From assembly GCA_950097015.1 (NCBI GenBank), contig CATNEN010000008.1, positions 186,001 to 250,000 of the forward strand: a stretch of 64,000 nt of DNA, in the 5' to 3' direction. This document shows, in pieces, positions 5,156 to 33,905 of the stretch. Source of the stretch: Macrostomum hystrix (Eukaryota > Animalia > Platyhelminthes). The translations under genes were made by a program, and so were the position numbers. The notes under the pieces were generated by a model. That model was given only the letters and a program-made list of their open reading frames with translations, ran no database searches and was not told the origin of the DNA. The first letter of the stretch is position 1. Every line of letters starts with the position of its first letter.

Positions 5156-5189
5156 CCCGCAGCCCTCCTGCAATTATTATTATACTAAA

Positions 5190-5540
5190 ACCACTCCTCC
5201 TCTACCCACTGCTCCTCTACCCACTGCTCCTCTACCCACTGCTCCTCTACCCACTCCTCCTCTACCCACTGCTCCTTTACCCACTACTCCTCTACCCACT
5301 GCTCCTCTACCCACTCCTCCTCTACCCACTCCTCCTCTACCCACTGCTCCTCTACCCACTCCTCCTCTACCCACTCCTCCTCTACCCACTGCTCCTCTAC
5401 CCACTCCTCCTCTACCCACTCCTCCTCTACCCACTCCTCCTCTACCCACTCCTCCTCTACCCACTGCTCCTCTACCCACTCCTCCTCTACCCACTGCTCC
5501 TTTACCCACTACTCCTCTACCCACTGCTCGTCTACCCACT
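5190..5540. repeat. 15-bp minisatellite (CCCACTGCTCCTCTA)n
   Basis: ~23 copies; same family as 23585-24665. Confidence 0.97.
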
Positions 5541-6016
5541 TATCTTGCCATAGGGTTCTCATGCTGCAGGATTCTTCTCATCCACTGTATCTTGGGCTGA
5601 AGCAAAACTTTCGTCACTACTCTGCTCGCTAATTTCTTCGTCTGCCGTATCTATGTTTGTCGAATGAAATCTGTTATTTTCTATGGTCTAAGTTTTGCAC
5701 AACTGTGGCGATTAATAGTGCGCCCAAATTCTCAAATTGATTGCTCCATAGACCCCCTTTCAGGCAATAGACAATGAAAAACAAGTCTTTAATAGCTTGA
5801 TTTTTCCACTAAGGATTAATTAATTTCCACTAATTAGCTTGAAAATGCTATATTTACTCTTTCTGTCTGACTTCACTCGGCTTCTTCATTAAACACAGTT
5901 TTACAACTCGATTTTACCATAGACAAAAGTGCCGGGTGTGAATGAGTTGGAGCGGACGGAGCCCGCTACTTTCGTCTATGTTTCGCCCGCAAAATCAGAG
6001 AGAACACAGCTCTATC

Positions 6017-9000
6017 CACAGATTCTATATTACCTAGATTGGTCACTCCAAGAGAAATCGTTCGTTCATCGAAAACCCAGTGTTTTTGCCACAGACGCGA
6101 GTTAAATACTGCCGCATTAATATATCTTTTTAGGAAACTATATGTTATTTGCCTTTAACGCTATAGGCGAGCCAATATTGAGAAATGACTTTTAATTGGA
6201 GAAAACGCGAGTAATTTCTGAGCCGAATATTTCTTGAATGCGCGGAACAATAAAAACAAATAAAGATAACATGGTGATTAAACAAGCAAGTATGACAGGC
6301 AAGCATGACAGATAAGCATGACAAGCAAACACAGATTCAAGAAAGCGTGTCAAATAAGTAAAAAAATGAAGCACAGTGAGTACCCTAACCATGCATCATG
6401 TCACAACTTTTTGAGCTTGCGGTTAGCAATAGCGCGATCTCTTTCCTTCCGCACAGTCTCCATCTTCTCTCGGCACCACTGATGCAATCGCATGTGCACA
6501 AAAAGCCTTGCCGCTTGTGCATTGCTTTCGGCTCGATGTTCGATACAAAATGGAAGCTGCACACTAAATCGCTCAAATCTGCCGAGGATTCTTGCCCCAA
6601 TGGCATCAGCAGCAGCTGCTGTTGACATTTCTCGACGAAAAATCTCCTCCATCTTGCAGAATATCGCAACACACGCGCTCGACGGCTGAGTAAGGCCGTA
6701 TCGAGAGTCTTCAAAGTTTTTGTGGGTGAAGATTCGAGCAGGTGACTCGTCTGTTACCAACTGATCCTTACAGGTGTCGCATGCAAAAATTTGCAGCTTC
6801 CGAAAAATCCATCCTCCGATGTAAGGGATTACTTCAGTAGCCTCCACATTGTCGAATGTAATTTCTGTTGCAACGTCTCCATCTGCAGAAACTGCCCGAT
6901 GCTGCTGGGGCTGCTCTGCAGCTGAAGTTGATGCAGGCGTGACTTTCTCACGTAAGTCACGAATCTCAACTGCCATGGCATCACCATCGTCCTCACAGTT
7001 TGTGCCATTCGCAAGCTTGCGTTCCATTTTGCCAGCACTGATGGATCGAAGTGCACCGAGAAACGCATGCAGTTCCGGCTTCTCGTTGAAGCCATTGCGG
7101 CCTCTCACGATGGAGAAAAAATTCTGCAGCAGAAACAAGAAGGCATTAACACCATATGTAACAACTGAAAAGCATTTTCAGGCAGATACTCACCTCGACA
7201 TGATCCTGGGAAAGGCGTCGAAGGCACAAATACGACACACCAGCTTCCGTTAGGCCAAAGTGAATGATGCGCTTCGCTGACTCGATAGAAAGCAGCCAGC
7301 CTTCTTTAAACGGCATGGTTGCCTTACTCCTTCCACCCCCCACAGGCGAGAATCGCCATGTCAAAATGAATTCTTGCGCTGCTGACAGCTGGCTCAGTAC
7401 CATCTCAGCGGACTCTTCGGTAACTGCACCTTTTCCATGCTTGCCGAATAAACTAGCAGAGTTGAGAATGTCAAACATCTCGTTTACTTTCTCCACAAAC
7501 TCAGCTGTCTGCAGAGCGGACTTCTCCATTCGATCATGATCAACCAGAACTCGCATGCCGCTCGCAACGGAATGGCTGAAAACCTGCGCCGCCAGCGAGA
7601 CTTTCATTTTCTGCGCGATACCGGGACAGAAATGCGCATCTGTCAGTTTTACCGCCAGCTTCAGCTCTCGTCTGCGCTCAGACTCGTAGAATTCACGCAG
7701 GTGTCGCCAGGTGGCCCGCTTGTTGCCACCATACTCGATGTCGTGCTTAAGTAGGCAGTTTCTCGTATTTTTCAAGCAGTGAGGAACGTCCAGTATGAAG
7801 TACACGGGCTCGCCTGTAGATGGATGTGGGAAGCTTGGCTGCGGCAAGGAGACCGTCTTCTTGATGTAAGCCCACTGTGTAGGCTCTTGATCAGTCACCA
7901 CTGCCTTCACACAAATTTCTGCTTCATTGGCGGCCTTCAGGCATTCGTTGATGGCAGCCTTGAATTCCGGTTGTTTTTGGCCGTGGTTGACAAAGTAGCA
8001 GGCGATGGGCTGTTTCCACGGGGCCGCGATGCCTCGCAGTTGTGCAACAATGGCCTGATTCACCGGCTTTGCATTTTCCAACGCCTCGAATCCTGAAGCC
8101 AGTCCAATAATTGCATCGCTATTCTTGTCAAACCTGACTGATGGAGAGATGCGCATTCCGTCCAGGCAGAGCGTAGCGATCTTCTCCTCCCTGGACTTTC
8201 GTGAAAAGTAGGTCTTCAGTTCAGCAATGGTGAAGCTGCAGACTCCGGTATCCGAAAAAAATAATCGAATTCTGCGCTTCAGAACTGTTTCGGATGGAAG
8301 CAGAAGGCCTGATTGCTTGCGTAAGAACCGATAAGCAGCAGGACTCAAGTGGTGAATCACAATGGCTTCTCGCACCTGCTTGCGATTCCAGCGCATACCG
8401 CGATTTCGAATTCGGTGTGTTGCAACTTTCTGTTGTTCAGAAGTGGCAGTTGAAGCTCTTTGAAGCTTCTGCTTTAATCTCTTGATGACTCCATCTCGAT
8501 ATCGAGCTCTATCCCGCTGTTTCTTCCGCTCCTTTCGAACTTCGTTGCGGTTGTTTGTTGCCCTATCTTCTGAACCAGTTTTATCCTGAGCGTCGGCTGG
8601 CATTGCGTGTAGCTCAGGCATCTCGACAGCGTACGTGTCTTCACGATGCAGTACTGGTGGATACATGTTGTCAGCAATGTGGTCTGGTCGCGGCTCGACT
8701 TCAACCGATTCCTTCTCCAAGCGTGGTGGAAAAGTGTAGGGATTTGGAAGGGCATCTTTTCTAAGTCGAGCTGAACGTCGTTCGTGTAGTGGGCAGGAGT
8801 AATCGGTTTCTTTAAAATGCAGACTGCACACTTTCAACCTCCGCTGCCGCACAAAATTCAAGTCAATATCGCGTAATTCAAGTATCTCTATCCAACGAAC
8901 TGCTACCTGGTCATCGCTTGGAAATTTGTGTAGATGGATTGCAAATCCATGCACTGAAGCTGGAGTGTCCTCTGTAGTATAGCAGGCAGCTGCACAACAA

Positions 9001-9220
9001 GCGTGGCTACTAAGACGGTTGATGATCAGCTCCATGGCTAACGTGCGAAGCAGAAGCTCACAGCCAGCGAGTTTTGAGCGAGCGATAGACCATCAAATAA
9101 ATTTTCTATCTGTCTAACTGTCTATGGGCAAAACTCTGGGTTTTCGCGGCAGACGGCTGGCGGACGCCGTTTCTATTGCAAATTCGATGAGTGACCAATC
9201 TAGGTAATATAGAATCTGTG
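6017..9220 (-). mobile_element. Apparently intact P-element/THAP9-like DNA transposon (3204 bp)
   Basis: 32-bp perfect TIRs CACAGATTCTATATTACCTAGATTGGTCACTC (6017-6048 / 9189-9220). 8-bp TSD GCTCTATC (6009-6016, 9221-9228). Subterminal inverted repeat ~6071-6096 / 9120-9146. A single GCTCTATC (empty site) is in copy B near 31865-31872. Confidence 0.95.
6401..9035 (-). CDS. THAP-domain P-element transposase, 2 exons (9035-7194, 7123-6401), ~854 aa
   Basis: N-terminal THAP C2CH (CAAACY...HKFP...W...VCSLHF). Catalytic-type motifs LCLDGM, VVTDQ, DVPHCLKNTRN, KMKVSLAAQVFS. A 70-bp intron (GTGAGT...CTGCAG) joins SQDHVE to NFFSIVRGRNG, restoring the conserved QDxxENFFS motif in frame. Confidence 0.93.
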
Positions 9221-9499
9221 GCTCTATCTATCGATTTTCGGGCTCGCTGCCCTCAAATCCATAGACAGAACTATAATTTGTCTCACGATTTCGCGGGCAA
9301 GACGGCCTAGGAGTGATGCTTACAGATTTTGTCTATGGCATGAACTTAAACGTTCATATAACACTGATAAGTAGCTTCAACGTTTGGTCTAGGTTGTGAT
9401 CATCAGCGACAATAAAAGTGAGCTAAAAAAATTCGTGATTTCCATTAAAAAAACAAAATCTATCTAACGACGACGATATAGTTATCAACACCCTAGAAA

Positions 9500-10194
9500 A
9501 TGCTGCCATTGGTTCGATTCGCACTTCTAGTCTGCGTTTTTGCTGTTCTTGCTCGCAGAGGTAGGTCTCATTGTGCCCATTCCGCTGAGCCTTAGACTAA
9601 ATCACTAGGGGGTGAGTGGCAGAGCGGTCTAACGCATTTGCCTCTCGCACCAAGGTCCCTGAGCTCGATTCCGTGGAGAGGCTACATCCATTTGTACTCA
9701 GTCGCTGCAGCGGAGAGAAGGCTTGGGGAGAAAGTCAGGGCAGGTGTATACACCTGTGAGTGTGCGCCTGAGTATGGTATCTGTGTGCGTGTGTGCTCAG
9801 GAGTCAGCAGAATGGGCGGAATTGCCTCTTCGCTGGCTGCGGTTCTAGCGTCACCAAATGATTTGCCATTTGCTCACAGCCATTTGCAAACAAAACTCAC
9901 TAAATCACTAATTTATTCTTCTCAGTTTCAAACAGCTGCCTGACCACAACTTTGTCAAATTGCGTGGCGAACGGAGATGCGTGCGACTTTGGAAAACCCT
10001 GCTGCAAGGGACTTTTCTGCGGCAGGTGTCGAATGAGCTGCTGTACACGTAATAACTGGAACCAGCCACCGCAGAAGTCCACGCCGACCTGCTTCGGAGA
10101 CTCGGAGGGATGCGGCTACAATAATCGGAATTGCTGCCCGGGCCTGTTCTGCGGCAGATGTCGCATGAGTTGCTGCACACCTTTCGGACGCTAA
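9500..10194 (+). CDS. Secreted tandem double cystine-knot (ICK-like) toxin-like peptide precursor, copy A; exons 9500-9560 and 9926-10194
   Basis: Exon 1 encodes the signal-like MLPLVRFALLVCVFAVLARR, followed by a phase-1 intron (GTAGGT...TTCTTCTCAG). Exon 2 has two 8-Cys domains, C-x6-C-x5/6-CC-x4-C-x2-C-x3-CC, joined by a 15-aa Pro-rich linker and ending PFGR* (amidation signal). Confidence 0.85.
9608..9873 (+). mobile_element. tRNA-derived SINE, copy 2 (internally deleted), inside peptide-gene intron
   Basis: A box TGGCAGAGCGG and B box-like GCTCGATTCC. Homologous to 4835-5155 but lacks ~75 bp of the body. Confidence 0.78.
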
Positions 10195-10799
10195 TACTAC
10201 AGCACATAATCAGCTGCCGACTGAGACTTTATTATTAGCTAGTTAATTCCTGTTAGCAAGCAGATTGCTTCGTTGTTTAGTTAATTTCCCTGGTTGGGAG
10301 GTCTGAAGTTCGAAATACAGCGAAAGAGAAATAATGCGTGCCTTTATACAGCCAATCTAAACAGATTGGTTGGGTAATTGGTCTTTTACATTATACTTTT
10401 CTCTGTACTTAACTCTGCTCGTCTCTATAATTCCAATGCACTAGATGAGTACTAGTAACATACACACGATACGATAGTTGCAGTCTCCCAATGACTTTCA
10501 AGTCAATCTAAATGATAGTTTAGACATTCAAAACAATTAATGTCTATGGATTTAACTATCCTCTAAGTAAACCTCGCCGCTAGAGACCATAGACGTTTGG
10601 ACAACCAAAACGAGAAAGGGGCATTCAAAACGAGAAGGAATTCAGACACTCGGAAGAAAATTCACCCTTTCGACCATAGACTAGAGACAACCAAAATGAT
10701 TAAACTTGGAAGGGAACGCTGAAAAACTCCATTGCCTTGTTCTCCGCCGGTTTGGCTTTCTCTCGATTCTTTCTTTGCTATTTCTTGTTGCTGTTTTTC

Positions 10800-11330
10800 G
10801 AATACCCCACCAATATCCTCAGTCGACAGGCAACGCTCGGTGTCTGCTATTATAGAGCAAGGGGCAACACTAAATGCCGCAGCAGCCATCCTGCAAGAGC
10901 CGATTGCAACTGCGTATAGAATTATGCGAGCATGTACGCAGGAAGGAAGGATTCAGGCGCTACCAAGAGGTGCATGGTAAAAAGAAGAGCAAATGCAAAG
11001 TGGACGAGGAGATGAAGGCCAGCCTTCAGAACAAGCTGGAGCAAAACCCGCTTTCCACCTTAAGTGACCTGCGCCGACTGCAACTAACACTGATGAAAAC
11101 CTGCAGGCCCGGAGAGAGTACGCGGATTTTATGCTACATCTGGATCCTGCAGTTCACATTGTCTACCTTGATGAGACGGGATTCAACCTTTGGCTCAGGC
11201 GCTCCCAAGGCCGCTCAATCAAGGGACAGCCAGTGAGGCGAATCGTAACCACTCAAAGGGGCCTAGCATCACCGTCTGCATGGCCATCTCTGCCGATTTT
11301 GGGCTCGTCCACTCAACTGCTTGATGGTTA
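10800..11330 (+). pseudogene. Decayed IS630/Tc1-mariner (DDE_3-type) transposase fragment, copy A
   Basis: Frameshifted pieces: HTH (SVDRQRSVSAIIEQGATLNAAAAIL...TAYRIM...GRIQALPRG), KVDEEMKASLQNKLEQNPLSTL, and HIVYLDETGFNLWLRRSQGRSIKGQ...QRG then (+frameshift) SITVCMAIS. Flanked by inverted subterminal ACATTCAAAACGAGAA-like motifs. Confidence 0.8.
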
Positions 11331-12249
11331 GATAGTTTTGCCTTCCTAATTCTCGTTTTGATTGCCGCTTTCTCATTTTGAATGTCCTTAACTCTATGGC
11401 CGAATAGCTGAGACCACAGACATTGTCGTTCTGAATGTCCAAATTATGATTTAGATTGACGAAACCGATACTTATAGCAACAACATCGAAGAGAAGAGGC
11501 CAAGAGAAAATGAGAAAGGAGAGGGATGAGTCGGGGAGAGATTAGACAATGAAAAGATGAGACCGAGAAGAGACGAGACACAGGAGAGGATAAGAGAGGA
11601 GACACTGTTCTTATTAGTAGTTCTAGATACTTTATGCGAGGTAGTTAATAACATGAACAAATAAAACAACTTTTCATGTTATTCTTACGGTGTAACGTAA
11701 TGTATTTAGACGAAACGATATTATTGATTTTAATGACCTCCTTGTTTATTTCAGACAACTTTATAATAAGTTGGTGAAAAAAATGGTGCCCGCTGTTTTA
11801 TATTTGAAATTTCAGCTGTTATTTAGTATAAACAAAAAATTGAACGAAAAAACATCTATGTAAAAAGTTAATTTAATACAGCAACTGTAACAGGACCCTG
11901 AAGATGATAAAAGCGATCATTAGTACATCGATTTTAAATAGTTAAGTATGTAAAAAATATCTGAATAAAGCAAATGTCAAGCTAGTAGCTTGATATATTG
12001 TAAATTTTTTTAGTAAAATCCAATCAAATATGGACTGAAGTAAAGTTAGAAGCAAAAAACAACTTGAAATTAAACGGGTGCCACCAAAAAATAATCACAA
12101 CTTGACAATTCGAATCAGATCTTTGTGACATAATTCTGAGAATAAGCTACTGATAATACTACTTGTTAGTAGCGTCGATTATAAGAGACGGCAGAGATAT
12201 TCGTAAGAGAAAAAACGGGCAAAAGGAGGACAAAATACTTTTACGGAAA

Positions 12250-12306
12250 AATTAACTCTGATATCTCGATTAGGAATTTAAAAAACTGAGATCATTAAAC
12301 TTGATT
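12250..12306 (+). other. Hairpin whose 3' arm resembles bantam miRNA; alternatively a bantam target site on the minus strand
   Basis: TGAGATCATTAAACTTGATT at 12287-12306 pairs by eye (17 of 19 positions incl. G:U, one bulge) with 12250-12268 around an 18-nt loop. Confidence 0.3.
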
Positions 12307-12509
12307 TCTAAGAAATACAGGCTACAACAGGAATGTATAAGCAGATGGCGCATAGGCCATGATGGCGATGGCGATGGCGCAGTAGCGGGGAATGCAAGCA
12401 GAATAAGTGAAAAATTGCTGACCACTCAATTCAAAGCTACACAGAATAAGGAGCTTTTCTAGTACTAATATACGCTCGCAGCATAATTCCCGACTATCCT
12501 TTAGCTGCT

Positions 12510-12770
12510 GATGTGCTCAAAATTTCATGCCTTAGGAAGCTTAAAGAGCATTCGAAATCTTATACCTTATAATCGGCATTAATGCACAAAATCTCATCCC
12601 TCATTATCGAAATTCGTGCTCAAAATCTCATCGCTCAGCATCTGCATTCATGCTCAAAATTTCATCATTAAGAATCTGCATGTACTGAAAATCTCATATC
12701 TTTGAATCAAGCGTATATGCTCAAAATCGTATCCCTAAGCTGCAGATGTTCTCAAATTTTCATTCCAAAT
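12510..12770. repeat. Degenerate ~30-35-bp tandem repeat
   Basis: Recurring TGCTCAAAAT(T/C)TCAT core ~8 times. Confidence 0.55.
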
Positions 12771-12868
12771 AAGCGGAGGGTTCGATTAGTTTTTTGTACA
12801 AGTGCAATTTTACAACCGACAAACGCCAAAGCAACAGAGACTAAATCTGGGAAATATCGCCTGTACCC

Positions 12869-15800
12869 CTACAGGCTAGTCTCGTACACAAGATTAGCCG
12901 CCGATAAATATACCGGCAGCCGATTGCGCTTCTGACGACGACGTCGGCGGCGCCTCTGAGGCCACAGAGTCGATGAAGTGTCGACATTCGCAGTGCCCTC
13001 AGCGTCGTCGTCTTCTAGCGGCCCGGGAATGGGCATCGAGCGAGCCCGGCGCTGCAGCTGCTGCGAAGCGCTTTCGCTCTTGTTGCGCTCTCTTGGATGA
13101 TAATAGGACTGCTGATGATAGTAACTATAATCTTCATCGTAGTCGTAAAATTCGTCATCGTCCTGACCGACTTCTTCGATTTCGCCTTCGTCCGTGTCCT
13201 CAGCGTAGCGCACGTAGCTTCTTGATCGTCGCGTTGGAGATGGTGTGTCACGACGGCGCCGGATAGAGAGCGCCAACGCCAGGTAGGATGGCTCACGCAG
13301 CAGGGACAGGGCAGACGAACTGTGCCGATAGTAGGACCCACCACCTAGCTTGTGCCGTCGGCGACGAACCCGACGACGATGACGCTGCTGCTGTTGTTTG
13401 GTGTCGACGCGCTTAGTAAAGAAGCCGGCAGTCATAGTGTGTCGCAGATCGTCCATGGATGCTGACGGTTGATTAGATGACAGAGCGGCCGCTGCAGGCT
13501 TCAGGCTCAGGTAGGGATTCGATCGGGCCGTGTAAGCGGTCGGTTGCGGCAGCTGGCGTCGGTTCAGACAGGCCAGGAGGAATTCGATTGCGCCGGTACC
13601 GAACGGGTCGGTTGGCGGCAGAGGCTGCGGCAGCGAGTGAGAAGTGTCCTCAGCTGCAGCTAACGGCAATTTCGGATTGCTGGCGGCTTCCGTCATCGAA
13701 CTCCTGTTCGCCGCTAGATTCGCTTCCTTCATCTCCAGGCGTGTCATTTTCTGAGTCTGAAAGACAAAAAATGGAGCTATGCGTAGATTAAATCAATCGA
13801 CCTTAATTTACTATACCAGTTATTACATCACATAAAATTAAATTTACCTTCCGAAGATGCCCAACGAGGATTGTTCACAATTCGAACAAAACCAGTTGGC
13901 GAAGGCGAAGGCGAAGGCGACGGCGACTGAGACGACAGCGGCGTGATTGCAGCACCAATGGCTGATGAGCCAGCCTCATCATCCGCACCAATATAGGCGC
14001 CACTTTTCTCACTTTCGACGCCCGACTCAGGCAGGGAAAATGCCTCCGTTTCTTGACGCTGATAGCCTGGCAGCTGCGGTGTATTATCAGACTCAAACGA
14101 CGTCTGAGATTCCGAGTTATGTTTGGGTGAACTTGAAACTGGCAAAGATGGCGAAGGTGGCTCTTTTGTCGATTTTGATGATTGCATAGACAATGATGAC
14201 CTTGCGGATAAAAACGAATCTTTTGGCGATGTTGACGAAGGCTTTGACAGTGGAGGAGACGATAATGGTGGCTTGGCGGTCTTCTTTTCACGCAGACGGC
14301 TGTTTTTACGTTGACTGAATTTGGACTTGCGAACTTCTTGAGGCGAACTGACTGCAGCAGTCTCTGGCGAAGCCGACGGTGGCAAGCTAGTGGACATATG
14401 ACTGCATAGACGCTGAGGCCTTACTAGTGTCAATGAGGCAGCTTCAACACAACCTATTTTTACGGCCAATACATCCTGGCAGCCGGTATCTCTCACACCG
14501 CTTTGCTTTGCTACAATTGCTGAAGTTCTGAAAGCAACTAGCTGCGGCTGTGCGAACGCAGTTGTGAAAGGATCATTAAGACTACTGGCTGTGCCTGGTG
14601 CTCGATGCAGAGAAGGCTGCTGTTGTTGTGGTTCGACTTCAGTCAGAAAAGTTTCATTCAAACGGTCAGTGCATGATTTTAACATTCGACTAGCGTACTC
14701 TGAGAAGCTCAGCGTTGGAATGTTGTCCTCTATGGGCACAATTGGTTCGACTGATAACGGGATCTCACTCTTTTTGTTATTGTTATATGGTATCGACGTC
14801 TTGGCTTTCGGCTTCTTTGTTCTAAATGACGACTTTATGGTTCGCTGGCTACCACGCTCTGTTGCTGGTTTTTCGATTTCTCGTTCCTTGTCTGTACTTG
14901 TAAGAGTTAATGGCGCGTCACTAGCTATGAGCTCCTTTGAATCGGGCAAAGAAGTCATCTTCTGTACTTGTTCAGTGGCTGCTAACCGACTAGTAGCAAT
15001 ACTATCCATGATGCGCTTTCTACCACTGAAGCTGCGAGATTTCGGTTTAAGCACATCAACCTTTGGTAACTGCGCTTGTTTTACGCTTTTAGAATCTGGT
15101 ACCTTTCTTCTAATGCTGCTGTGAGAATAGACACTACGTGCTGTGGCTGATCGTTGGAGATTCTCTGTGTCTTTAACCAGCAAATTTTTACTAGTGGAAT
15201 CGCTGACCAGTTTTCGACTATGAAGAGAAGCAGACGAGGTCATAGAAAAGCTTTCTTCTGCGTATTCGCTACTAGACCCGGAGTCAGACTGCGAGCCAAC
15301 GCTAGAGCAAGCCAGGTCTTTATCTACTAGCTTTGAAACTGCAGGAGTAACTGGCTTGACCAGCACAGGTGGCTCCTTAGACAAATCAGAGTGACGCCCA
15401 ACGATGATTACCCCAGACTTATAGGCTTCCGTTTTCTGTGCGCTCATATTCTCTGGCCGAGGTGTCACTTCTTCGGAAATGGTTTCAAGCGCCTTGCTTG
15501 GTTGACTGGGAAAAACTGACTGCGGCTCTTCGTCATAGGCGTGTAACTCCTCATCGATATCCATATCGCTATCTGAAGTTGATGAGCTCGAACTGCTAGC
15601 TGTCCGCTGCTTGGCTGCAGCAGGATAAGGGCGGACCGAAGATGGCAAGCTCGAGGAGCTAAAGTTTTCACCATTGTTGCCCGGCTCAATATTTTGCTGT
15701 TTAGAGCCCGATTCACCTGCAGAGATTCGAAGCGCTCGATCTTCTTGTCCACGATGCTCGGGTATAGACAATGTGGTAGCAGTAGAAACTTGAGGACTAG

Positions 15801-23584: not shown

Positions 23585-24665
23585 TCTACCCACTGCTCCT
23601 CTACCCACTGCTCCTCTACCCACTGCTCCTCTACCTGCACTGCTCCTCTACCCACTGCTCCTCTACCCACTGCTCCTCTACCCACTGCTCCTCTACCCAC
23701 TGTTCCTCTACCCACTGCTCCTCTACCTACTGCTCCTCTACCCACTCCTCCTCCACCCACTGCTCCTCTACCCACTGCTCCTCTACCCACTGCTCCTCTA
23801 CCCACTCCTCCTCCACCCACTGCTCCTCTACCCACTGCTCCTCTACCCACTGCTCCTCTACCCACTGCTCCTCTACCCACTGCTCCTCTACCCACTCCTC
23901 CTCCACCCACTGTTCCTCTACCCACTGCTCCTCTACCCACTGCTCCTCTACCCACTGCTCCTCTACCCACTGCTCCTCTACCCACTGCTCCTCTACCCAC
24001 TCCTCCTCCACCCACTGCTCCTCTACCCACTGCTCCTCTACCCACTGCTCCTCTACCCACTGCTCCTCTACCCACTCCTCCTCTACCCACTGCTCCTCTA
24101 CCCACCCTTCTCTACCCACTCCTCCTCTACCCACTGCTCCTCTACCCACTGGATCCTCTACCCACTGCTCCTCTACCCACTGCTCCTCTACCCACTGCTC
24201 CTCTACCCACTGCTCCTCTACCCACTGCTACTCTACCCACTCCTCCTCTACCTGCACTGCTCCTCTACCCACTGCTCCTCTACCCACTCCTCCTCCACCC
24301 ACTGCTCCTCTACCCACTCCTCCTCTACCCACTGCTCCTCTACCCACCCTTCTCTACCCACTCCTCCTCTACCCACTGCTCCTCTACCCACTGCTCCTCT
24401 ACCCACTGCTCCTCTACCTGCACTGCTCCTCTACCCACTGCTCCTCTACCCACTGCTCCTCTACCCACTCCTCCTCTACCCACTCCTCCTCTACCCACTG
24501 CTCCTCTACCCACTGCTCCTCTACCCACTGCTCCTCTACCCACTGCTCCTCTACCCACTGCTCCTCTACCTGCACTGCTCCTCTACCCACTGCTCCTCTA
24601 CCCACTCCTCCTCCACCCACTGCTCCTCTAACCACTGCTCCTCTACCCTGCACTGCTCCTCTCTA
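23585..24665. repeat. 15-bp minisatellite (CCCACTGCTCCTCTA)n, ~70 copies
   Basis: Same unit as 5190-5540; it generates the spurious LLYP ORF 23448..24770. Confidence 0.97.
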
Positions 24666-25668
24666 CCCTATATTCTTTCCATTTCTTTCCTCCTTTTTCT
24701 CTCTTCCCTTTCTCCCTTTCTTTCTATTCCCTTGTTACGCACCTTTTTTCGCTTTGCTTCCTTGTCATAGCTACCTTTTTCCTCTTTTACAGTCGATTCC
24801 CCTCCTTTTTAACCTTTCCTTTCTACTTTCTGTTGCGCCAATTTTTTTCCAAGCCTCCTAATAACCGAAATATCCAGTTCTATCAGCACCACTCCTACTC
24901 ACTCAACTCAACACTGAAGACTGACTACCTGGCCTGCATCCACGGCCCTTTTTCTTGCAGCCATGCACTTTCCGTAATCCTGCTTTTGTAGACTGTTTTT
25001 ATCTAAATTATATAATTATTAATGGTAGACAATCCTATTACCTTCTTCTTCTTTCAGGAACATGTGACTGTCGTTGGAAGCTTCTTTTACCACACCGGCC
25101 AGTTCGACACTTGTCCTGAGTCAATTTCCCGTGATGCGCATTTTCGGAGCCCTTGATCCTGTGCCCTGACGGATGTTCCTGAATCCTACAGATCTTGAAA
25201 AAAGCTATCTTGCCATTCGATGGTATTTTACGCGATTTAAATAGCATACACCTTAAGCATTGGCAGTTTGAATTGTCATATAGTATATTTTTTAAGCTAA
25301 ATATATTTGAAAGCCATAAAACGATACTAATGCTTGTATTATTATCGAGTAAGTTGCACGTTTCAGCTAAATTCTAAAAAAAACTTCTCACCTTTTATTG
25401 CTAGTTGAACTCCTAAGCGGTTCAGTTGAATTTTTCAAATAGCTTGGTTCGTTTATGCATTTATTGAACTAATGTCTCTACATGAAATGGGAATTTCTAT
25501 GAAGTCAGTGTTGATGTAAAAAAACAATTCTCTGCATTTATAATACTCGTACGTGACCGGACACTATAATATCCATTCTGACTGGAGGGTCACTACACCT
25601 TCTCCCGGTCAAATTCAACGTTTTACCAATCAGCTTAGCCAAGTTTCATTATCATCTCGCCTAGCTGC

Positions 25669-27169
25669 GGTATAATATACCATTAATACCCATGCTTTAA
25701 GGGCGTTGATGGAAAATCAGAGGGCGCCGTTAGGCGCCCGAGGATTTTTCATTGACGCCCGCAAAGCTTGGGTATCAATTTTATTGTACCATAGACGTTT
25801 TTGCCTTCGGGGTGTGGGGGCGAAGCCCCCACCCACTACCATAGACTATTTTACTATAAAGTCAAATCGTACGCTGAGCCTTGTTTTTCTCTCCTTTTCA
25901 CCACTCAGCGGACCTTTATTCTATCTACAGTATCTCTCTCTCATTTCTTTCTCTCCCTCTTGGTGCGTGATAAGCAATGCCATAGACTAAAACTGCACGA
26001 AGTCTGAACAAGTTGATGAGGGAAAGGAAAACTAAGGCTAGCTCAGAAATTTCTTTCCTTCAAATCTCCACTGAGCCATGATCAAGATCTACGACGGAAT
26101 AGTGGAAGGCGAGATTGTAGGCTTGTCCACTGATGAGTTGCGCTTCGTCACTGATGAATCGGTCAACCGCTCCGGAGATACTGCGATATCTCAATTCACC
26201 GGACTCGTGACTCTCGAAGCAAGCTTCGTCGAGCAGTTTATGCTGGGATTGTCAGATTATCCGGAGTTAAGCGAGAGCGAGGTACAAGAGATGTCCTCGT
26301 ACAAGAGATAAGGCCGTATGCCCCGTTGAGGCATTCACTCTCTACCTAGAGAAGCTTCCTAGCGACAACCCGAACCTGTTCCCAAGACCGAGGGCCAACT
26401 GGACGGGCGGCGACTGGTTCTGCAGGAAGGAGGTCTTGGGTAAGAACACGCTCGCCGGATTTATGAAGGTTCTCTCCCAGGAAGCTGGTCTCGGTCGGTC
26501 GTACACAAATCACTGCATTCGTGCGACTACAATCACTACTCTGTCGGAGCAAGGCTTCAGTGCGGAACAAATTCAGGCCGTCTCGGGGCACAAGAGACTG
26601 GAGAACGTGATCCGGTACACCAAGCGAGTGTCAATGGATCAAAAGCGTCTACTGTCAACGTCCATGACTTCTGGCTTGCACGGAAGCACCAGCACGCTAG
26701 AAGAAGCAACTCCCGCTAAGCGGATCACTGCAGAGCAGGATGAGACATTGCAGGCAAGCGACATAGCGGCCAGAGAACCCACGATTGTCCTGGAGAAAAA
26801 CGTGGTAAAGTGTTCGATCTACTTGTAACGTGCTTTGAGCCATGACTGCGACATTGACGGCTTTGATTTACCGATTGTTTTTTACCAATTTACCGATTTA
26901 CCGAAGTACCGAAAGTACTACGCTTGTTCGTAATTTTTTTTGTTGAAAGCCTAAATGTCTATCATTGTTGAACTCCAAAGCTACCTGCTTTACAATGCAC
27001 TATTGTTTCACGATTTCTGTCTGGAAAAAATTTGCGGGCAGTTAATGACGTTTGCACCATAGAGTAGACTTCGACGCATATTTATTGAAAGCGGGCTTTA
27101 ATGTAGTCTATGATATTATCGGGCAGGATTAAGTGCCCGCCGGGCAAAAAGGTCATGGTACAATATACC
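25669..27169 (+). mobile_element. Internally deleted Crypton-type tyrosine-recombinase DNA transposon
   Basis: Bounded by direct repeats GGTATAATATACC (25669-25681) and GGTACAATATACC (27157-27169); contains a YR C-terminal ORF. Confidence 0.65.
26316..26828 (+). pseudogene. C-terminal half of Crypton/KCTD1-DUF3504-like tyrosine recombinase
   Basis: The frame extends upstream of ORF 26436: VCPVEAFTLYLEKLPSDNPNLFPRPRANW...WFCRKEVLGKNTLAGFMK...YTNHCIRAT...SGHK...IRY. The HxxR, GH and catalytic Y motifs are present. The N-terminal catalytic Arg region is absent, and the upstream ORF 26078..26311 is in another frame. Confidence 0.85.
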
Positions 27170-27188
27170 TTTTTGCAATTGAATTCGT

Positions 27189-27844
27189 CGAAACCGCAAA
27201 ACAATTCCCCATAGAAGCCAATGTGGTCTAAAAATAGTAAGCCCATAGAAATTAAGCTAAAATTCCAGATTGAATTCGCCGAAATTTCATTTGAATTCGC
27301 GTTACGCGCCAATGGCTTGTATTCATTTGACAGGACAAAAAGCTTCGAAGGGGAAACAATCAAAGAGGAAAGAAAGTTTGCGAACTGATGTACGAGTAGA
27401 ATGAAGTCAACCGAACGATCAAAGAAAAGAGCAATCAATTATGCCAAAATGTCTTCATGATTCAGGCAGCGATTCAAATAGGTTGCCGTGTGATTAGCCC
27501 ACTGCAAGCACTTCTGCTGTGTGATCTGCTGTAGGGCGACCGTCACCTCACGTCTCAGAATTCCCATTCTCCAGGTGTGAAATGTGATGCCAAGGTTTGC
27601 TGCTGCAGCCGTATTGAGCAGTTCCGCACGAACTGGCATGGCAAGTCCTCTCAGCATTTTGAAAACAGGATAGAGAAGGACTGTCGAATTTAAATTGCTG
27701 CGATTTTAGCAACATATAGACACCTCACCAGTGCGAATTCAAATGCAATTTCGGCGAATTCAATCTCGAATTTTAGCTTAATTTCTATGGGCTTACTATT
27801 TTTAGACCACATTGGCTTCTATGGGGAATTGTTTTGCAGTTTCG
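27189..27844. mobile_element. Fold-back MITE with ~112-bp inverted arms enclosing an IS630-like transposase C-terminal remnant
   Basis: Arms 27189-27300 and 27733-27844 are reverse complements with few mismatches. The internal minus ORF 27439..27657 ends CLQWANHTATYLNRCLNHEDI, resembling the CxxWxxHxxxYxxRCLxxExI tail of DDE_3/IS630-like proteins. Confidence 0.75.
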
Positions 27845-28519
27845 GCGCAAAACTTTTTAGCCTGCGGTAATGACAAATGTCTATGGTGATTTCGTATGCT
27901 TTGGACTTAAGAGAAGTCCAAAAAGCGTGCGGTAATGGCGGTGGCATTACCGCACGCCTTTTCAAACTGTAGGAAACGATAGGAGACATAGGCGAATGAA
28001 TTTATGTCTATGGCAAGAAGGGGTAACAAGCTCAAAAACGATTTTCAAACTAGCTCAAATAGGATCAAATTCCACTATATGTAGTAAAAAATTCAAAATT
28101 AAGTACAGGTGTTTTAATGCTATACGAAATTATTGTCTTGATTTAAGGATCTATAATTTTATTGGCAACATTTACTCTGCTTCCTACACAGCAGCTTGAT
28201 TCGACGTAGCTTGCACAAATGCATTGAAAAACATGCTATTTTTTAACCTCAAAAAAACTGTTTTCCGGCTTTAAATAAAAATAAATAAAACATCATTTTA
28301 AAAAATCAGTATCATATTATGCTAGGGTATAAATTCCGGCCTTATCTGGTATAGAGCATTAGGCGACACCATATTGTCAATCCTTATTTTTGAGATTAAA
28401 GTTTTCAAAAGTTAAGAGAAAAACGCAGTTTTTTGTTGCCATAGCAACAAAAAATAACAACAATAGCAACACAACCATATTTAGACCCCTTGGGGTAGAG
28501 GGCAAGCTACGCTAGGGTA

Positions 28520-28778
28520 AAGGACAAGCTGCACTGGGGCAGAGGACAAGCTGCACTGGGGCAGAGGACAAGCTGCACTGGGGCAGAGGACAAGCTGCAC
28601 TGGGGCAGAGGACAAGCTGCACTGGGGCAGAGGACAAGCTGCACTGGGGCAGAGGACAAGCTGCACTGGGGCAGAGGACAAGCTGCACTGGGGCAGAGGA
28701 CAAGCTGCACTGGGGCAGAGGACAAGCTGCACTGGGGCAGAGGACAAGCTGCACTGGGGCAGAGGACAAGCTGCACTC
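28520..28778. repeat. 22-bp tandem repeat (~12 copies)
   Basis: Unit GCACTGGGGCAGAGGACAAGCT. Confidence 0.97.
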
Positions 28779-29723
28779 GGGTAGGGGTTTATCTAGAGCG
28801 AAGTTCGCATGACATTTCTTCGACCAATGGGTGTTTTTTAGTATAAATCCCATGACAAGTTCCCGCAGATCATATTCTGAAAGCAATTTGTAAGCATCTG
28901 CATGCACTTTATGTAACCTATTCGTAATCAACTATGCGGGTTAGCTAGTCAATCTCTCTTTTCTCTAACTTCCTATATCATTATATCGATTACTGCCTGG
29001 CCGTATCACAACCAACATGTATCTAAATCCTTTATCTTGCATACCATTTCACAATCGCTTGTGGCATTTTTACCGAGTGAGGCTGCAGTTAGACCCATTA
29101 ATCAGTAGCGCCACTGCAATGTCTCCAATCTGTACTGTATTGATTCTCACTTTCTCAATTTCATAATTAGTTTATCGTGCATTAGCCAGGCAGTTATTAA
29201 TATAATTAACTTATTATGACATGCGCTCGAACGAATAAAAAATCGAAATTATTTGCGAATAACTAGGCCAGTGTTGAAAAAGAATTCTTTCCTTACTTCT
29301 TCTTCTTCTTCTTCCTAATTCTTTACGTAAGATTCGTATCTGCATAGAGTCACGCAAGGTACTCACGCATGATACTTGTCTACTTTCAAGTATCAATGAC
29401 CTTTGATTAACTTGTTTCTCTGTCATCTCTCTCATTTCTTTCCGGTCTCATCTACTCTTGTCTAATCTCTCCTGTGCCTCTTCTCTTCTCCGTCTCATCT
29501 TTTGATTGTCTAATCTCTCCCCGTCTCATCCCTCTCCTTTCTCATTTTCTCTTGGCCTCTTCTCTTCGATGTTGTTCCTATAAGTATCGGTTTCGTCAAT
29601 CTAAATCATAATTTGGACATTCAGAACGACAATGTCTGTGGTCTCAGCTATTCGGCCATAGAGTTAAGGACATTCAAAATGAGAAAGCGGCAATCAAAAC
29701 GAGAATTAGGAAGGCAAAACAAT

Positions 29724-30270
29724 CTAACCATCAAGCAGTTGAGTGGACGAGCCCAAAATCTGCAGAGATGGCCATGCAGACGGTGATGCTAGGCCCCTTT
29801 GAGTGGTTACGATTCGCCTCACTGGCTGTCCCTTGACTGAGCGGCCTTGGGAGCGCCTGAGCCAAAGGTTGAATCCCGTCTCATCAAGGTAGACGGTGTG
29901 AACTGCAGGATCCAGATGTAGCATAAAATCCGCGTACTCTCTCCGGGCCTGCAGGTTTTCATCAGTGTTAGTTGCAGTCGGCGCAGGTCACTTAAGGTGG
30001 AAAGCGGGTTTTGCTCCAGCTTGTTCTGAAGGCTGGCCTTCATCTCCTCGTCCACTTTGCATTTGCTCTTCTTTTTACCATGCACCTCTTGGTAGCGCCT
30101 GAATCCTTCCTTCCTGCGTACATGCTCGCATAATTCTATACGCAGTTGCAATCGGCTCTTGCAGGATGGCTGCTGCGGCATTTAGTGTTGCCCCTTGCTC
30201 TATAATAGCAGACACCGAGCGTTGCCTGTCGACTGAGGATATTGGTGGGGTATTCGAAAAACAGCAACAA
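29724..30270 (-). pseudogene. Decayed IS630/Tc1-like transposase fragment, copy B
   Basis: Same pieces and same lesions as 10800-11330, so the decay predates the duplication. Confidence 0.8.
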
Positions 30271-30429
30271 GAAATAGCAAAGAAAGAATGGAGAGAAAGC
30301 CAGACCGGCGGAGAACAAGGCAAGGGATTTTTCAGCATTCCCTTCCAAGTTTTATCATTTTGGTTGTCTCTAGTCTATGGTCGAAAGGGTGAATTTTCTT
30401 CCGAGTGTCTGAATTCATTCTCGTTTTGA

Positions 30430-30570
30430 ATGTCTAAAACATTAGACATTCTAGTCTAAAACATAGAAATTCTAGTCTAAAACGTTAGACATTCTAGTCT
30501 AAAACATAGACATTCTAGTCTAAAACATTAGACATTCTAGTCTAAAACATAGACATTCTAGTCTAAAAAA
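30430..30570. repeat. ~20-21-bp tandem repeat of a mini-hairpin (TAGACATTCTAGTCTAAAACA)
   Basis: ~7 copies; each has TAGAC...GTCTA inverted halves; absent from copy A. Confidence 0.85.
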
Positions 30571-30909
30571 TGCACAATCATTTATATTGACAAAAGCTAT
30601 ACTTAAAAGTCATTGGGAGACTGCAACTATCGTATCGTGTGTATGTTACTAGTACTCATCTAGTGCATTGGAATTATAGAGACGAGCAGAGTTAAGTACA
30701 GAGAAAAGTATAATGTAAAAGACCAATTACCCAACCAATCTGTTTAGATTGGCTGTATAAAGGCACGCATTATTTCTCTTTCGCTGTATTTCGAACTTCA
30801 GACCTCCCAATCAGGGAAATTAACTAAACAACGAAGCAATCTGCTTGCTAACAGGAATTAACTAGCTAACAATAAAGTCTCAGTCGGCAGCTGATTATGT
30901 GCTGTAGTA

Positions 30910-31591
30910 TTAGCGTCCGAAAGGTGTGCAGCAACTCATGCGACATCTGCCGCAGAACAGGCCCGGGCAGCAATTCCGATTATTGTAGCCGCATCCCTCC
31001 GAGTCTCCGAAGCAGGTCGGCGTGGACTTCTGCGGTGGCTGGTTCCAGTTTTTACGTGTACAGCAGTTCATTCGACACCTGCCGCAGAAAAGTCCCTTGC
31101 AGCAGGGTTTTCCAAAGTCGCACGCATCTCCGTTCGCCACGCAATTCGACAAAGTTGTGGTCAGGCAGCTGTTTGAAACTGAGATGAATAAATTAGTGAT
31201 TTAGTGAGTTTTGTTTGCAAATGGCAAATCATTCGGTGACGCTAGAACCGCAGCCAGCGAAGAGGCAATTCCGCCCATTCTGCTGACTCCTGAGCACACG
31301 CGCACACAGATACCATACTCAGGCGCACACTCACAGGTGTGTGTACACCTGCCCTGACTTTCTCCCCAAGCCTTCTCTCCGCTGCAGCGACTGAGTACAA
31401 ATGGATGTAGCCTCTCCACGGAATCGAGCTCAGGGACCTTGGTGCGAGAGGCAAATGCGTTAGACCGCTCTGCCACTCACCCCCTAGTGATTTAGCTAAG
31501 GCTCAGCGGAATGGGCACAATGAGACCTACCTCTGCGAGCAAGAACAGCAAAAACGCAGACTAGAAGTGCGAATCGAACCAATGGCAGCAT
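30910..31591 (-). CDS. Secreted double cystine-knot peptide precursor, copy B; exons 31591-31531 and 31178-30910
   Basis: Intact splice sites and ORF; differs from copy A at two residues seen (RMS to RMN, TRNN to TRKN). Confidence 0.85.
31220..31484 (-). mobile_element. tRNA-derived SINE, copy 3 (duplicate of copy 2)
   Basis: Reverse complement of 9608-9873. Confidence 0.78.
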
Positions 31592-32027
31592 TTTCTAGGG
31601 TGTTGATAACTATAGCGTCGTCGTTAGATAAACTTTGTTTTTTTAACGGAAATCACGAAAGTTTCTTAGCTCACTTGTATTGTCGCTGATGATCACAACC
31701 TAGACCAAACGTTGAAGCTAATTATCAGCGTTATACGAACGTTTAAGTTCATGCCATAGACAAAATCTGTAAGCATCACTCCTAGGCCGTCTTGCCCGCG
31801 AAATCGTGAGACAAATTATAGTTCTGTCTATGGATTTGAGGGCAGCGGGCCCGAAAATCGATAGATAGAGCTGTGTTCTCTCTGATTTTGCGGGCGAAAC
31901 ATAGACGAAAGTAGCGGGCTCCGTCCGCTCCAACTCATTCACACCCGGCATATTTGTCTATGGTAAAATCGAGTTGTCAAACTGCGTTTAATGAAGAAGC
32001 CGAGTGAAGTCAGACAGAAAGAGTATA

Positions 32028-33393
32028 CACTCAGCAACATTGAAAAGTTTCCACCCTCGCGCAAGTTGTATATTTAGAGTTTCAAAACCGGTTTTTGTCG
32101 CCAGACTTGTGCCATAGACGATTGATGATTTCGTCAACACGCACTTGGGCCATAGACGCCAGACAAGTCGAAGGAAACATTCACATGTAGCAGTCAGCTT
32201 ACAGGAGTCTATGATCCACGTTCGCAACCAAACGGAATGGTTCGCCAAATGACCGACCTGGAACGAGCGCGCGCCGTTGGCATGCTGGACGCTGGGGTGT
32301 CCATCCGAGCTATTACTCGCCAAATTGGTCTCGCACAGCAATCCGCAAACTGCAGATCAAGTGCAGAGAAACTGGCAGCGTGGCGCTAGCGTGGCGTGGC
32401 GCTAGCGTGGCGCTAGCGCAGCGCGGCGCTAGCGTGGCGTGGCGCTGGCGCGGCCGGCGGCTCAATTTGCGCAGTACAACTAGGAGGGCGGACCGGCGAT
32501 CGCTGCGAATGTCGAAGGGAAGCCCCACATTGCCAGCCACCCTGCTACGGCTGATGTGGGCTGAAAGAAGCAGGCGAGGGGATATTCTGAGCGCCCAAAC
32601 CATCCGACGACAATAGCGGGAGTCGGGGCTCTGATCCCGTAAGATGCGCAAGCGGCCACGCCTGACCCCAACCCATGTGGCCAGCCGGCAACAATGGGCA
32701 ATGCAAAGGGTCCAGTGGAGGCAGCAGCAGTGGCGGCGAGTGATTTTCTCGGATGATAGCCGCTTTCGATTGTTCCGTGCCGACGGCCGCATTCGCGTGT
32801 GGCGCCAGCCACGCCAGGAGATGCTGCCGCAGCACGTGCAAAACTCAGAGAGCCAGTCAGCTTCTATTCACGTGTGGGCAGGCATCAAAATGCACGCAAA
32901 GACGGAGCTTGTGTTCCTGGATGCGACTGTGACTGCCGAGTCGTATTTGCCAATTTTTTTGCCAAGCCAACCTTCTACAGACGCTGCTGCCCTTCATTGA
33001 TGCTTCATGTGGTGGCGTGGGGAACAGCGTCCTCCAAGACGACAACGCCCCACCGCATCGCGCAGCCGCTGTGGTGCATCTGAAGGACTGACTACTTCGG
33101 AATCACTGTCTACCGCGAATCACTGTCTACTGCATGGCAACAGCTACCGAAAGATTTTCTGCGACGCCTGGTTGTGGGTATGCCCGGAGAGTGTGCGCTC
33201 TGCTGCTATACGCGTTACTGACCCTGTTCTGGGCCAGTTGGCACCAGATGCTCGCGTAATTTCTTTGCTGTTCGTTTGCTTCGTTCGAATCCGGATTTTA
33301 TATTTGTCTATGGCTCAAACCACTAATATCTCCACCCACCAAAACGTTGACGCTTCGCGCGCTAGGGTGGAAACTTTTCAATGTTGCTGAGTG
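32028..33393 (+). mobile_element. Tc1-family DNA transposon, defective (frameshifted transposase)
   Basis: 30-bp TIR CACTCAGCAACATTGAAAAGTTTCCACCCT at both ends; TA TSD (32026-27, 33394-95). Transposase pieces MVRQMTDLERARAVGMLDAG, RKRPRLT...WRRVIFSDDSRFRL...VWAGI, LQDDNAPPHR. The empty site is in copy A at ~5845-5860. Confidence 0.93.
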
Positions 33394-33643
33394 TATATAG
33401 CATTTTTCAAGCCAAGCTATAGGAGTATTTTTCAATAGCTCCTTATTGCTGTCGATTTGCGCAGTGAAATAAATTTTCCATTTTAAAGCAAACTTCTGGT
33501 TATGTTTACCGTTCTTTAGTTGGAATTTATTTTATATTAAAGCATTGAAATAGAATAGCAATTAGAATTTTACCTTCGTCCACAGGCTGCAATACGTACA
33601 GGACGGACTGGATAGGGTTTAGAGGGCCCCTAATACTTTCTGC

Positions 33644-33905
33644 ACCCCTTCCTCAGTCTGTCTTCTACCCCTTCCTCAGACTGTCTTCTACCCCTTCCTC
33701 AGACTGTCTTCTACCCCTTCCTCAGACTGTCTTCTACCCCTTCCTCAGACTGTCTTCTACCCCTTCCTGAGACTGTCTACCCCTTCCTCAGACTGTCTAC
33801 CCCTTCCTCAAACTGTCTTCTACCCCTTCCTCAGACTGTCTACCCCTTCCTCAGTCTGTCTACCCCTTCCTCAGTCTGTCTACCCCTTCCTCAGACTGTT
33901 TACCC
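33644..33905. repeat. 23/20-bp tandem repeat
   Basis: Unit CTTCTACCCCTTCCTCAGACTGT. Confidence 0.92.

Follow-up and report, generated by a model that had tools for sequence, protein, structure and literature searches.

A young inverted duplication of a peptide gene in Macrostomum hystrix, probably local in origin and later invaded by transposons

How did a peptide gene of the flatworm Macrostomum hystrix come to stand twice on one contig, in opposite orientations and amid transposon sequence? An earlier inspection of the window (the whole analysed stretch of 64,000 nucleotides of contig 8), referred to here as the sequence-only reading, placed a duplicated unit of ~2.6 kb at 5837-11589 and, inverted, at 29468-33412, around an 18-kb segment, and interpreted it as a cassette built by transposons that may be mobile and multiply a toxin gene. 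Our data point instead to a young, local inverted segmental duplication, probably made by transposase-free break repair and later invaded by transposons. We give this reading a probability of about 0.75.

The duplication itself is real, and its coordinates had been given nearly exactly. An ancestral unit of ~2.59 kb occurs twice, head-to-head, around a spacer of 17,853 bp:

5834 to 11601, plus strand: left arm (derived), including the later P-element insertion
11602 to 29454, no strand: spacer, 17,853 bp
29455 to 33415, minus strand: right arm (parental), including the later Tc1-like insertion

The inverted repeat blocks shared by the arms are 97-99% identical; homology is unbroken in the right arm (29455-32025) and split in the left (5855-6016 and 9221-11601). 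Beyond the Tc1-like insertion of the right arm some 20 more arm bases match (left 5834-5854, right 33415-33396), and the true arms are therefore taken as 5834-11601 and 29455-33415; this short match was non-significant in a free local search and is accepted solely because it exactly adjoins the insertion site. Self-BLAST of the whole window detected no arm homology past 5834/33415 or 11601/29455. Over 2380 aligned sites the arms show 45 substitutions (1.89%, or 98.1% identity, excluding one remodelled patch of 118/170 bp), which corresponds to ~0.95% per arm. The arms form a segmental inverted duplication, being two copies of more than 1 kb and more than 90% identity that contain non-repeat host sequence and face opposite ways on one chromosome. 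Both inner flanks of the arms are unique in the genome. The spacer contains a single-copy open frame of 1992 amino acids (13828-19806, minus strand), whose one distant paralogue, on contig 11, is unlinked to the peptide family, as well as a 15-bp minisatellite and a decayed fragment of a tyrosine recombinase (Crypton-like).

Each arm carries the same intact two-exon peptide gene, consisting of a signal-peptide exon, a phase-1 intron and an exon with two 8-Cys knots:

9500 to 9560, plus strand: left exon 1, with start codon, signal peptide and phase-1 end, read from the sequence
9561 to 9925, plus strand: left intron, GT..AG, with a SINE-like repeat inside
9926 to 10194, plus strand: left exon 2, two tandem 8-Cys knots and stop codon
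31531 to 31591, minus strand: right exon 1, its position mapped via the arm alignment
30910 to 31178, minus strand: right exon 2, open frame

Exon 1 is identical between the arms and has a homologous exon in the paralogues on contig 24. Exon 2 differs at three positions, S/N, N/K and one silent, so that the earlier description of two intact frames with two amino-acid differences holds; with so few changes, two of them replacements and one silent, dN/dS between the arm copies is powerless. The family comprises five loci in two clusters in the 220-Mb genome. Its paralogues share the signal exon, the intron and the 3'UTR, and the mature-peptide exon is unalignable at the DNA level. Knottins (inhibitor cystine knot peptides) are defined by a C-C-CC-C-C framework with a knotted three-disulfide core, and its classic spacing, C-x6-C-x5-CC-x4-C-x10-C, is present in the contig-24 paralogues. 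Each knot of the left exon 2 reads C-x6/7-C-x5/6-CC-x4-C-x2-C-x3-CC, and the peptide of the window retains the first five cysteine positions in each half.

For the peptide precursor and the P transposase, both spliced products, the searches used the single exons. The peptide had no Pfam family and no match in the word search; its atlas neighbours are knottin-like and all below threshold, and its best PDB matches are to the spider double-knot toxin DkTx (E 0.002-0.01, weak and cysteine-driven). The product is a putative lineage-specific secreted peptide of a knottin-like, "double-knot" type. It resembles DkTx, and knottin gene families with a conserved signal and a variable mature peptide, in having two tandem cystine-rich knots behind a signal peptide; in contrast to the 6-Cys framework, each knot here has 8 Cys and a terminal CC. 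The word "toxin" would denote no more than a resemblance, by way of the weak PDB matches to DkTx. M. hystrix is not known as venomous.

Transposon sequence makes up much of the unit. The intron repeat, the CCATAGAC motifs and the 3' element, called IS630-like in the sequence-only reading, are indeed in it:

9259 to 9338, plus strand: 80-bp element with CCATAGAC at one boundary and its reverse complement at the other; right-arm copy 31754-31833
10492 to 11472, plus strand: non-autonomous DNA element, ~980 bp with ~50-bp terminal inverted repeats (TIRs); right-arm copy 29583-30612
30433 to 30602, minus strand: array of seven 21-22-bp units, right arm only, replacing 118 bp of the ~980-bp element

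The SINE-like dispersed repeat of the left intron (~9597-9880; other genomic copies 76-80% identical) occupies the same intron position in the contig-24 paralogues and hence predates the duplication. ARAGORN and Rfam gave no call for a tRNA origin, and its A/B-box likeness is by eye only. The ~980-bp element has at least 25 genomic copies (79-92% identity) and was copied along with the unit, as arm homology runs ~125 bp past it. The left counterpart of the array (10504-10621) is subterminal in the element and matches the other genomic copies. For the label "IS630-like" given to this element, no Pfam match was obtained at E<=5, the HTH-like pattern being seen by eye only. Three more genomic copies of the 80-bp element are 78-79% identical. 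The CCATAGAC motif is found 22 times where 1.5 would be expected, and it sits subterminally in several element families of this locus.

The two large inserts do not belong to the repeated unit: they are distinct transposons, each private to one arm, and both came in once the duplication existed. The unequal size of the arms is due to them:

6017 to 9220, minus strand: P-superfamily transposon, left arm only, with perfect 32-bp TIRs
7194 to 9035, minus strand: first exon of the P transposase, an open frame of 614 codons
6401 to 7123, minus strand: P transposase exon 2, 240 codons and stop
32026 to 33395, plus strand: Tc1/mariner-like element, right arm only, core 32028-33393, ~39-bp TIRs

Each insertion has a matching empty site in the opposite arm. 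The P element is flanked by the 8-bp target-site duplication (TSD) GCTCTATC at 6009-6016 and 9221-9228, with the empty site at 31864-31871 of the right arm. Its TIRs are 100% identical to each other, and its two transposase exons, separated by a 70-nt GT-AG intron (7124-7193), encode the Pfam domains THAP, HTH, RNaseH_N, GTP-binding insertion and RNaseH_C. A TIR length close to the typical ~31 bp, the 8-bp TSD and the THAP/RNase H/GTP-binding-insertion transposase place it in the P superfamily. Other pieces in the genome match the element at 99-100% identity; the element itself is apparently intact, apparently autonomous and, judging from this identity, probably active. The P element of Drosophila, with TIRs of 31 bp against 32 bp here, has the same TSD length and the same transposase architecture with an intron. 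The many internally deleted copies and the insertion just 5' of a gene likewise recall Drosophila P and its KP-type derivatives, whereas the flatworm host and the single evident intron set the present element apart.

The Tc1-like element has TA at both sides and a decayed reading frame. It occurs in more than 40 genomic copies, with TA flanks in 15 of 15. The domain HTH_Tnp_Tc3_1 was found in a sister copy at E=6e-5, above the cut-off; no match to a DDE/D catalytic domain, the remaining hallmark of Tc1/mariner, was obtained in the copies examined, because their frames are all broken. The right-arm copy has three private substitutions in 1317 sites (0.23%, against ~0.95% per arm), and the insertion is younger than the duplication.

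Which copy is the parent is decided by the outer flanks. The right outer flank (33416-33899) matches the region upstream of a contig-24 paralogue at 84% identity, this homology stopping exactly at 33416; the left outer flank (5564-5819) is an unrelated dispersed repeat that ends at most 14 bp from the arm. The right copy is the parent, as it retains the normal upstream context of the family. The ancestral outer junction is thus kept by one copy, the right, as the staggered-break model has it. The regions downstream of the contig-24 paralogues yielded no alignment matches to either inner flank.

Taken in order, the events are as follows. A stretch of 2.59 kb, comprising the peptide gene, its intronic SINE-like repeat and the 3' non-autonomous element, was copied once from the right-hand locus and placed head-to-head ~18 kb from it. 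Two insertions upstream of the start codons followed this duplication: that of the Tc1-like element, 0.43 kb from the start codon of the right copy, and, very recently, that of the apparently intact P element, 0.28 kb from the start codon of the left copy. The structure of the locus, its copy number, the insertion order and the parenthood of the right copy are shown by the data, and the route of repair is inferred: most likely a break was mended, perhaps with an inversion of the spacer at the same time.

There are two ways in which such repair may have proceeded. One, the likelier by a small margin though somewhat short of an even chance, is a small inversion by staggered breaks, in which the sequence between the cuts would have ended up on either side of the inverted piece. 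Of 29 Drosophila inversions, 17 are described in terms of this model by Ranz et al. (2007; PMC1885836), with duplications of at most ~1.9 kb in D. yakuba. The resemblance extends to inverted copies of non-repetitive, gene-bearing sequence that exactly bound one segment, to ends free of TSD or transposon, and to an ancestral outer junction kept once (PMC1885836). However, the duplicated stretch of 2.6 kb exceeds the 1.9-kb D. yakuba maximum, and the segment is only 18 kb. Moreover, in contrast to the Drosophila inversions, the inversion here is a proposed one, at a locus known from a single genome.

The other way, nearly as probable, is copying without inversion, a break near 5833 having been repaired with 2.6 kb copied from the right locus. 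Template switching or synthesis-dependent repair may have been involved, with the break perhaps at the terminus of the neighbouring repeat and the orientation of the spacer unchanged. The ancestral outer flank kept at the right copy is consistent with this, as is the purine-rich tract at the inner end, which is longer by ~50 bp in the right copy. In addition, the left arm starts at most 14 bp from a repeat terminus, and a word of 7-8 bp, TAGCTTG(A), is present both in the neighbouring repeat and at the arm start; however, this microhomology is short and lies within AT-rich sequence, and the inverted orientation and exact placement at both ends of the segment would have to be chance.

Low-copy inverted repeats mediate inversions by non-allelic homologous recombination (NAHR), for example where they flank polymorphic inversions in humans, and flipping of the spacer through recombination between the arms is plausible on these general grounds. 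Like such repeats, the arms are of kilobase scale, 98% identical, on one chromosome and with long identical tracts; in contrast to them, they are short, each is interrupted or flanked by a different transposon, and in the single assembly they stand in one orientation. We consider it unlikely that they act as recombination substrates by which the 18-kb spacer flips, or has flipped, between orientations in the population. In its favour, the arms are homologous over 2.38 kb without interruption, the longest identical run reaching 393 bp, and the lower divergence of the centre (0.92%, against 2.57% elsewhere; Fisher p=0.003) is as expected from gene conversion between the arms. However, the divergent edges are of low complexity and may simply mutate faster, the left arm is now split by the P element, and the published assembly derives from an inbred line, with separately assembled haplotypes purged (PMC10468722). 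Just as well, an earlier inversion may have left the duplication behind as its trace, instead of having been caused by it.

Distinctly less probable is that the locus is either an active switch, which flips the 18-kb segment and homogenises the peptide genes, or a duplication made by a transposase acting at adjacent repeat termini. A transposase-made break comes into consideration because the left arm lies near a repeat terminus and because, on contig 39, a related Tc1-like TIR adjoins a copy of the first 100 bp of the arm. If the locus were a switch, individuals would differ in the orientation of the segment with the 1992-aa gene; if the transposase were responsible, this would be a one-off, transposase-driven capture of a host peptide gene.

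The mobile cassette from which the question started is highly improbable as an explanation. Transposon sequence makes up much of the unit, CCATAGAC motifs are 15-fold enriched and the outer boundary coincides with the homology breakpoint relative to the contig-24 paralogues, all as such a cassette would have it. However, a genome-wide search for dispersed copies with the same boundaries, proposed along with the cassette, found no third copy: the whole unit occurs just twice in 220 Mb, both times in the window, as do the peptide exon and its signal exon, and the other genomic matches to the unit are to its internal repeats alone. At the unit ends the best inverted match has a score of 17, against a shuffle mean of 16.5-17 (reached by 133-156 of 300 shuffles), and the longest word common to both flanks is 4 bp for either arm, in agreement with the earlier remark that no convincing TSD was found; applied to the P element, this test does return its 8-bp TSD. 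Moreover, the right copy lies in its native family context and is not inserted there. Gene-carrying transposons such as Pack-MULEs, Helitron captures and composite transposons also combine a host gene with surrounding transposon sequence in more than one copy, but this unit has neither element termini nor TSD and only two copies. Five family loci in two clusters do not amount to amplification, and the transposons of the unit, being either older residents copied with the gene or later arrivals in a single arm, are not its vehicle.

Finally, that one locus or its two haplotypes were assembled twice in opposite orientations is scarcely credible, even though separately assembled haplotypes had required purging (PMC10468722), given that the arms are set apart by 45 substitutions, by several indels, by one remodelled patch and by two different private transposons, that their four flanks are mutually unrelated, and that the 18 kb separating them is unique sequence with a gene in it.

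The finding leaves current understanding unchanged, and the idea of a transposon vehicle does not hold. As a young local duplication, the locus would be a clean and datable small example of a gene for a putative lineage-specific secreted peptide gaining a second copy, with DNA transposons of apparently active families, P and Tc1-like, then landing in the promoters of both copies. Such promoter insertions could make the two peptide copies diverge in expression. The locus is also a ready test case for inversion-coupled duplication outside insects, and its P element, apparently autonomous, comes from a genus of flatworms used for transgenesis.

The two arms, a left, derived copy of the duplicated unit and a right, inverted parental copy, were delimited by an inverted-repeat scan and BLAST of both regions, which gave blocks of 97-99% identity. 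An insert of 3204 bases interrupts the left arm, and the right arm is continuous across these blocks. Arm homology ends at 32025 because a Tc1-like element begins there; past this element about 20 bases match the left arm again (left 5834-5854, right 33415-33396) and adjoin the insertion site exactly. Removal of the Tc1-like element together with one TA restores the left-arm sequence, a single base excepted. The ancestral unit measures ~2.59 kb and the spacer 17,853 bp, and the coordinates and ~2.6-kb unit of the sequence-only reading are confirmed.

Features of the locus (positions in the window, which is contig 8:186001-250000, unless a contig is named)
5834-11601 (left) and 29455-33415 (right), inverted: full arms, block matches plus the outer ~20 bases
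5855-6016 (left) and 32025-31864 (right), inverted: arm block, 97-99% identity
9221-10503 (left) and 31871-30601 (right), inverted: arm block, 97-99% identity
10622-11601 (left) and 30432-29455 (right), inverted: arm block, 97-99% identity
6017-9220: P-superfamily transposon, apparently intact, with perfect 32-bp TIRs, 8-bp TSD and a two-exon THAP transposase of 854 codons
9259-9338: 80-bp element bounded by CCATAGAC, with three further genomic copies
9500 (start codon) to 9560 (phase 1): peptide exon 1, left copy, a 20-residue hydrophobic signal exon
to 9925: GT-AG intron, left copy, containing a dispersed SINE-like repeat
9926-10194: peptide exon 2, left copy, two tandem units of C-x6/7-C-x5/6-CC-x4-C-x2-C-x3-CC
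10492-11472: non-autonomous element of 980 bp, TIRs ~50 bp, at least 25 genomic copies
13828-19806, minus strand: uninterrupted open frame of 1992 aa, serine- and acid-rich with internal repeats
26436-26828, within 25789-28013: decayed tyrosine-recombinase (Crypton-like) fragment
contig 24, 3204290-3212760: three tandem paralogues of the peptide gene at ~4-kb spacing, each after a 20-23-bp minisatellite

The unit had been read from sequence as a transposon-built and perhaps mobile cassette, to be checked by a search for dispersed copies. Searches of the whole assembly (220,453,370 bases in 42 contigs) with the unit, the peptide exon and the signal exon found no site beyond the two in the window, the remaining matches being to internal repeats alone. 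No inverted-repeat pairing was found between the unit ends, and the longest word common to the flanks is 4 bp, with a script that retrieves the TSD of the P element. These results speak against mobility, and they bear out the earlier remark that no convincing TSD is present. A retrocopy is excluded, as the copying also took in the intron and the upstream region. The motif CCATAGAC was counted 22 times in the window, where 1.5 occurrences are expected (15-fold enrichment); it lies subterminally in several families of elements. The arms extend ~125 bp beyond the 980-bp element into a purine-rich tract, so that this element predates the copying of the unit.

The three contig-24 paralogues have in common with the window gene the signal exon, the 3'UTR and an intron with the repeat at the same place, which makes this repeat older than the family. 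In exon 2 the paralogues have one 6-Cys knot of the classic type, and its DNA does not align with exon 2 in the window; this knottin comes after the shared signal exon and the intron with the SINE in two of the three, and in the third the start codon is lost and exon 2 was not found. The window gene is therefore a doubled derivative of the single knot. Searches with the spliced products used each exon separately. The peptide gave weak, cysteine-driven matches to a spider double-knot toxin (E 0.002-0.01) and sub-threshold atlas neighbours, which makes the label "toxin" at best tentative.

The outer flank on the right (33416-33899) matches the sequence upstream of a contig-24 paralogue at 84% identity, minisatellite included, and this homology ends at 33416, the same base where the homology between the arms starts. 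The left outer flank is an unrelated dispersed repeat ending at most 14 bp from the arm. The right copy therefore lies in the native surroundings of the gene, and the left one is derived. At the left outer junction (5790-5841), an AT-rich core is surrounded by two copies each of TAGCTTGA and TTTCCACTAA in mirrored order, possibly a scar of repair or template switching. One 15-bp minisatellite family occurs in direct orientation beside the left arm (5056-5685) and in the spacer (23502-24770).

The 1992-aa frame in the spacer matches no Pfam family and is single-copy, with one paralogue (45% identity) on contig 11, open for ~1939 aa. The Crypton-like fragment is flanked by opposed CCATAGAC motifs (25789-25987 on the plus strand, 27879-28013 on the minus strand), and its region contains a 112-bp inverted repeat (27189-27300 and 27733-27844).

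The insert splitting the left arm starts with CACAGATTC, and its last 32 bases are the exact reverse complement of its first 32. GCTCTATC stands on either side (6009-6016 and 9221-9228), and this octamer is single in the right arm. Two long frames with THAP, P-element HTH, RNase H-N, GTP-binding insertion and RNase H-C domains are linked in frame by a 70-nt GT-AG intron, yielding 854 codons. The insert is a P-superfamily transposon; the left arm holds its filled site and the right arm the empty one. Its identity to other genomic pieces is 99-100%, and it is the sole uninterrupted full-length copy among 24 genomic candidates, the others being internal-deletion derivatives; the near-identity of these many derivatives (96-100%) suggests recent activity. 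The Tc1-like element has more than 40 genomic copies with a common pair of end points, TA on each side in 15 of 15 copies, and a Tc3-type HTH in a sister copy. The right-arm insertion has just 3 private substitutions over 1317 sites and is younger than the arms. On contig 39 (7731684-7731830), a copy of the first 100 bp of the arm (87% identity) adjoins a TIR belonging to a related Tc1-like element, at the same TA and oriented as in the right arm, which may reflect target-site preference or an older composite.

Between the arms, 45 substitutions in 2380 sites (1.89%) were counted, one remodelled patch excluded. In that patch (30433-30602, right arm only), seven 21-22-bp near-palindromic tandem units stand in place of 118 subterminal bp in the 980-bp element; the left 118 bp matches other copies of the element, so it is the right arm that changed, since the duplication. 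Exon 1 is identical and exon 2 has two replacement changes and one silent change, in agreement with the two amino-acid differences seen earlier; from three changes dN/dS is not estimable. Divergence is 0.92% in the gene and 3' region versus 2.57% elsewhere (p=0.003), and identical runs reach at most 393 bp. Coding constraint was rejected as the cause, the intron and element core being low as well. Inter-arm gene conversion or faster change of low-complexity edges would explain the gradient, which hints at exchange between the arms.

Inverted gene-bearing copies lie at both ends of one segment, transposon ends are absent, and one copy keeps the ancestral outer junction. Exactly such a topology is generated by staggered breaks during inversion formation (PMC1885836), an origin to which we assign a probability of about 40%. 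Nearly as likely is templated copying into a break close by, which is almost as good a fit and is slightly favoured by the purine-rich tract, ~50 bp longer in the right copy. A transposase-assisted event is improbable, and an assembly artefact even more so. The assembly was made with PacBio from an inbred line, with haplotigs purged (PMC10468722). In order, the family arose when its intron already held the SINE-like repeat; knot doubling and insertion of the 980-bp element followed on the contig-8 lineage, then the inverted duplication, whose arms are now 1.9% apart, then entry of the Tc1-like element 0.43 kb upstream of the right gene copy and, last, of the P element 0.28 kb upstream of the left one. 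Under staggered breakage, the duplication would be a by-product of a past inversion, not its substrate; inter-arm recombination could flip the spacer at present. Overall, the locus is a recent local duplication, in inverted orientation, of a lineage-specific knottin-like gene, with later entry of active transposons. The structure is real, well described and of an ordinary kind.
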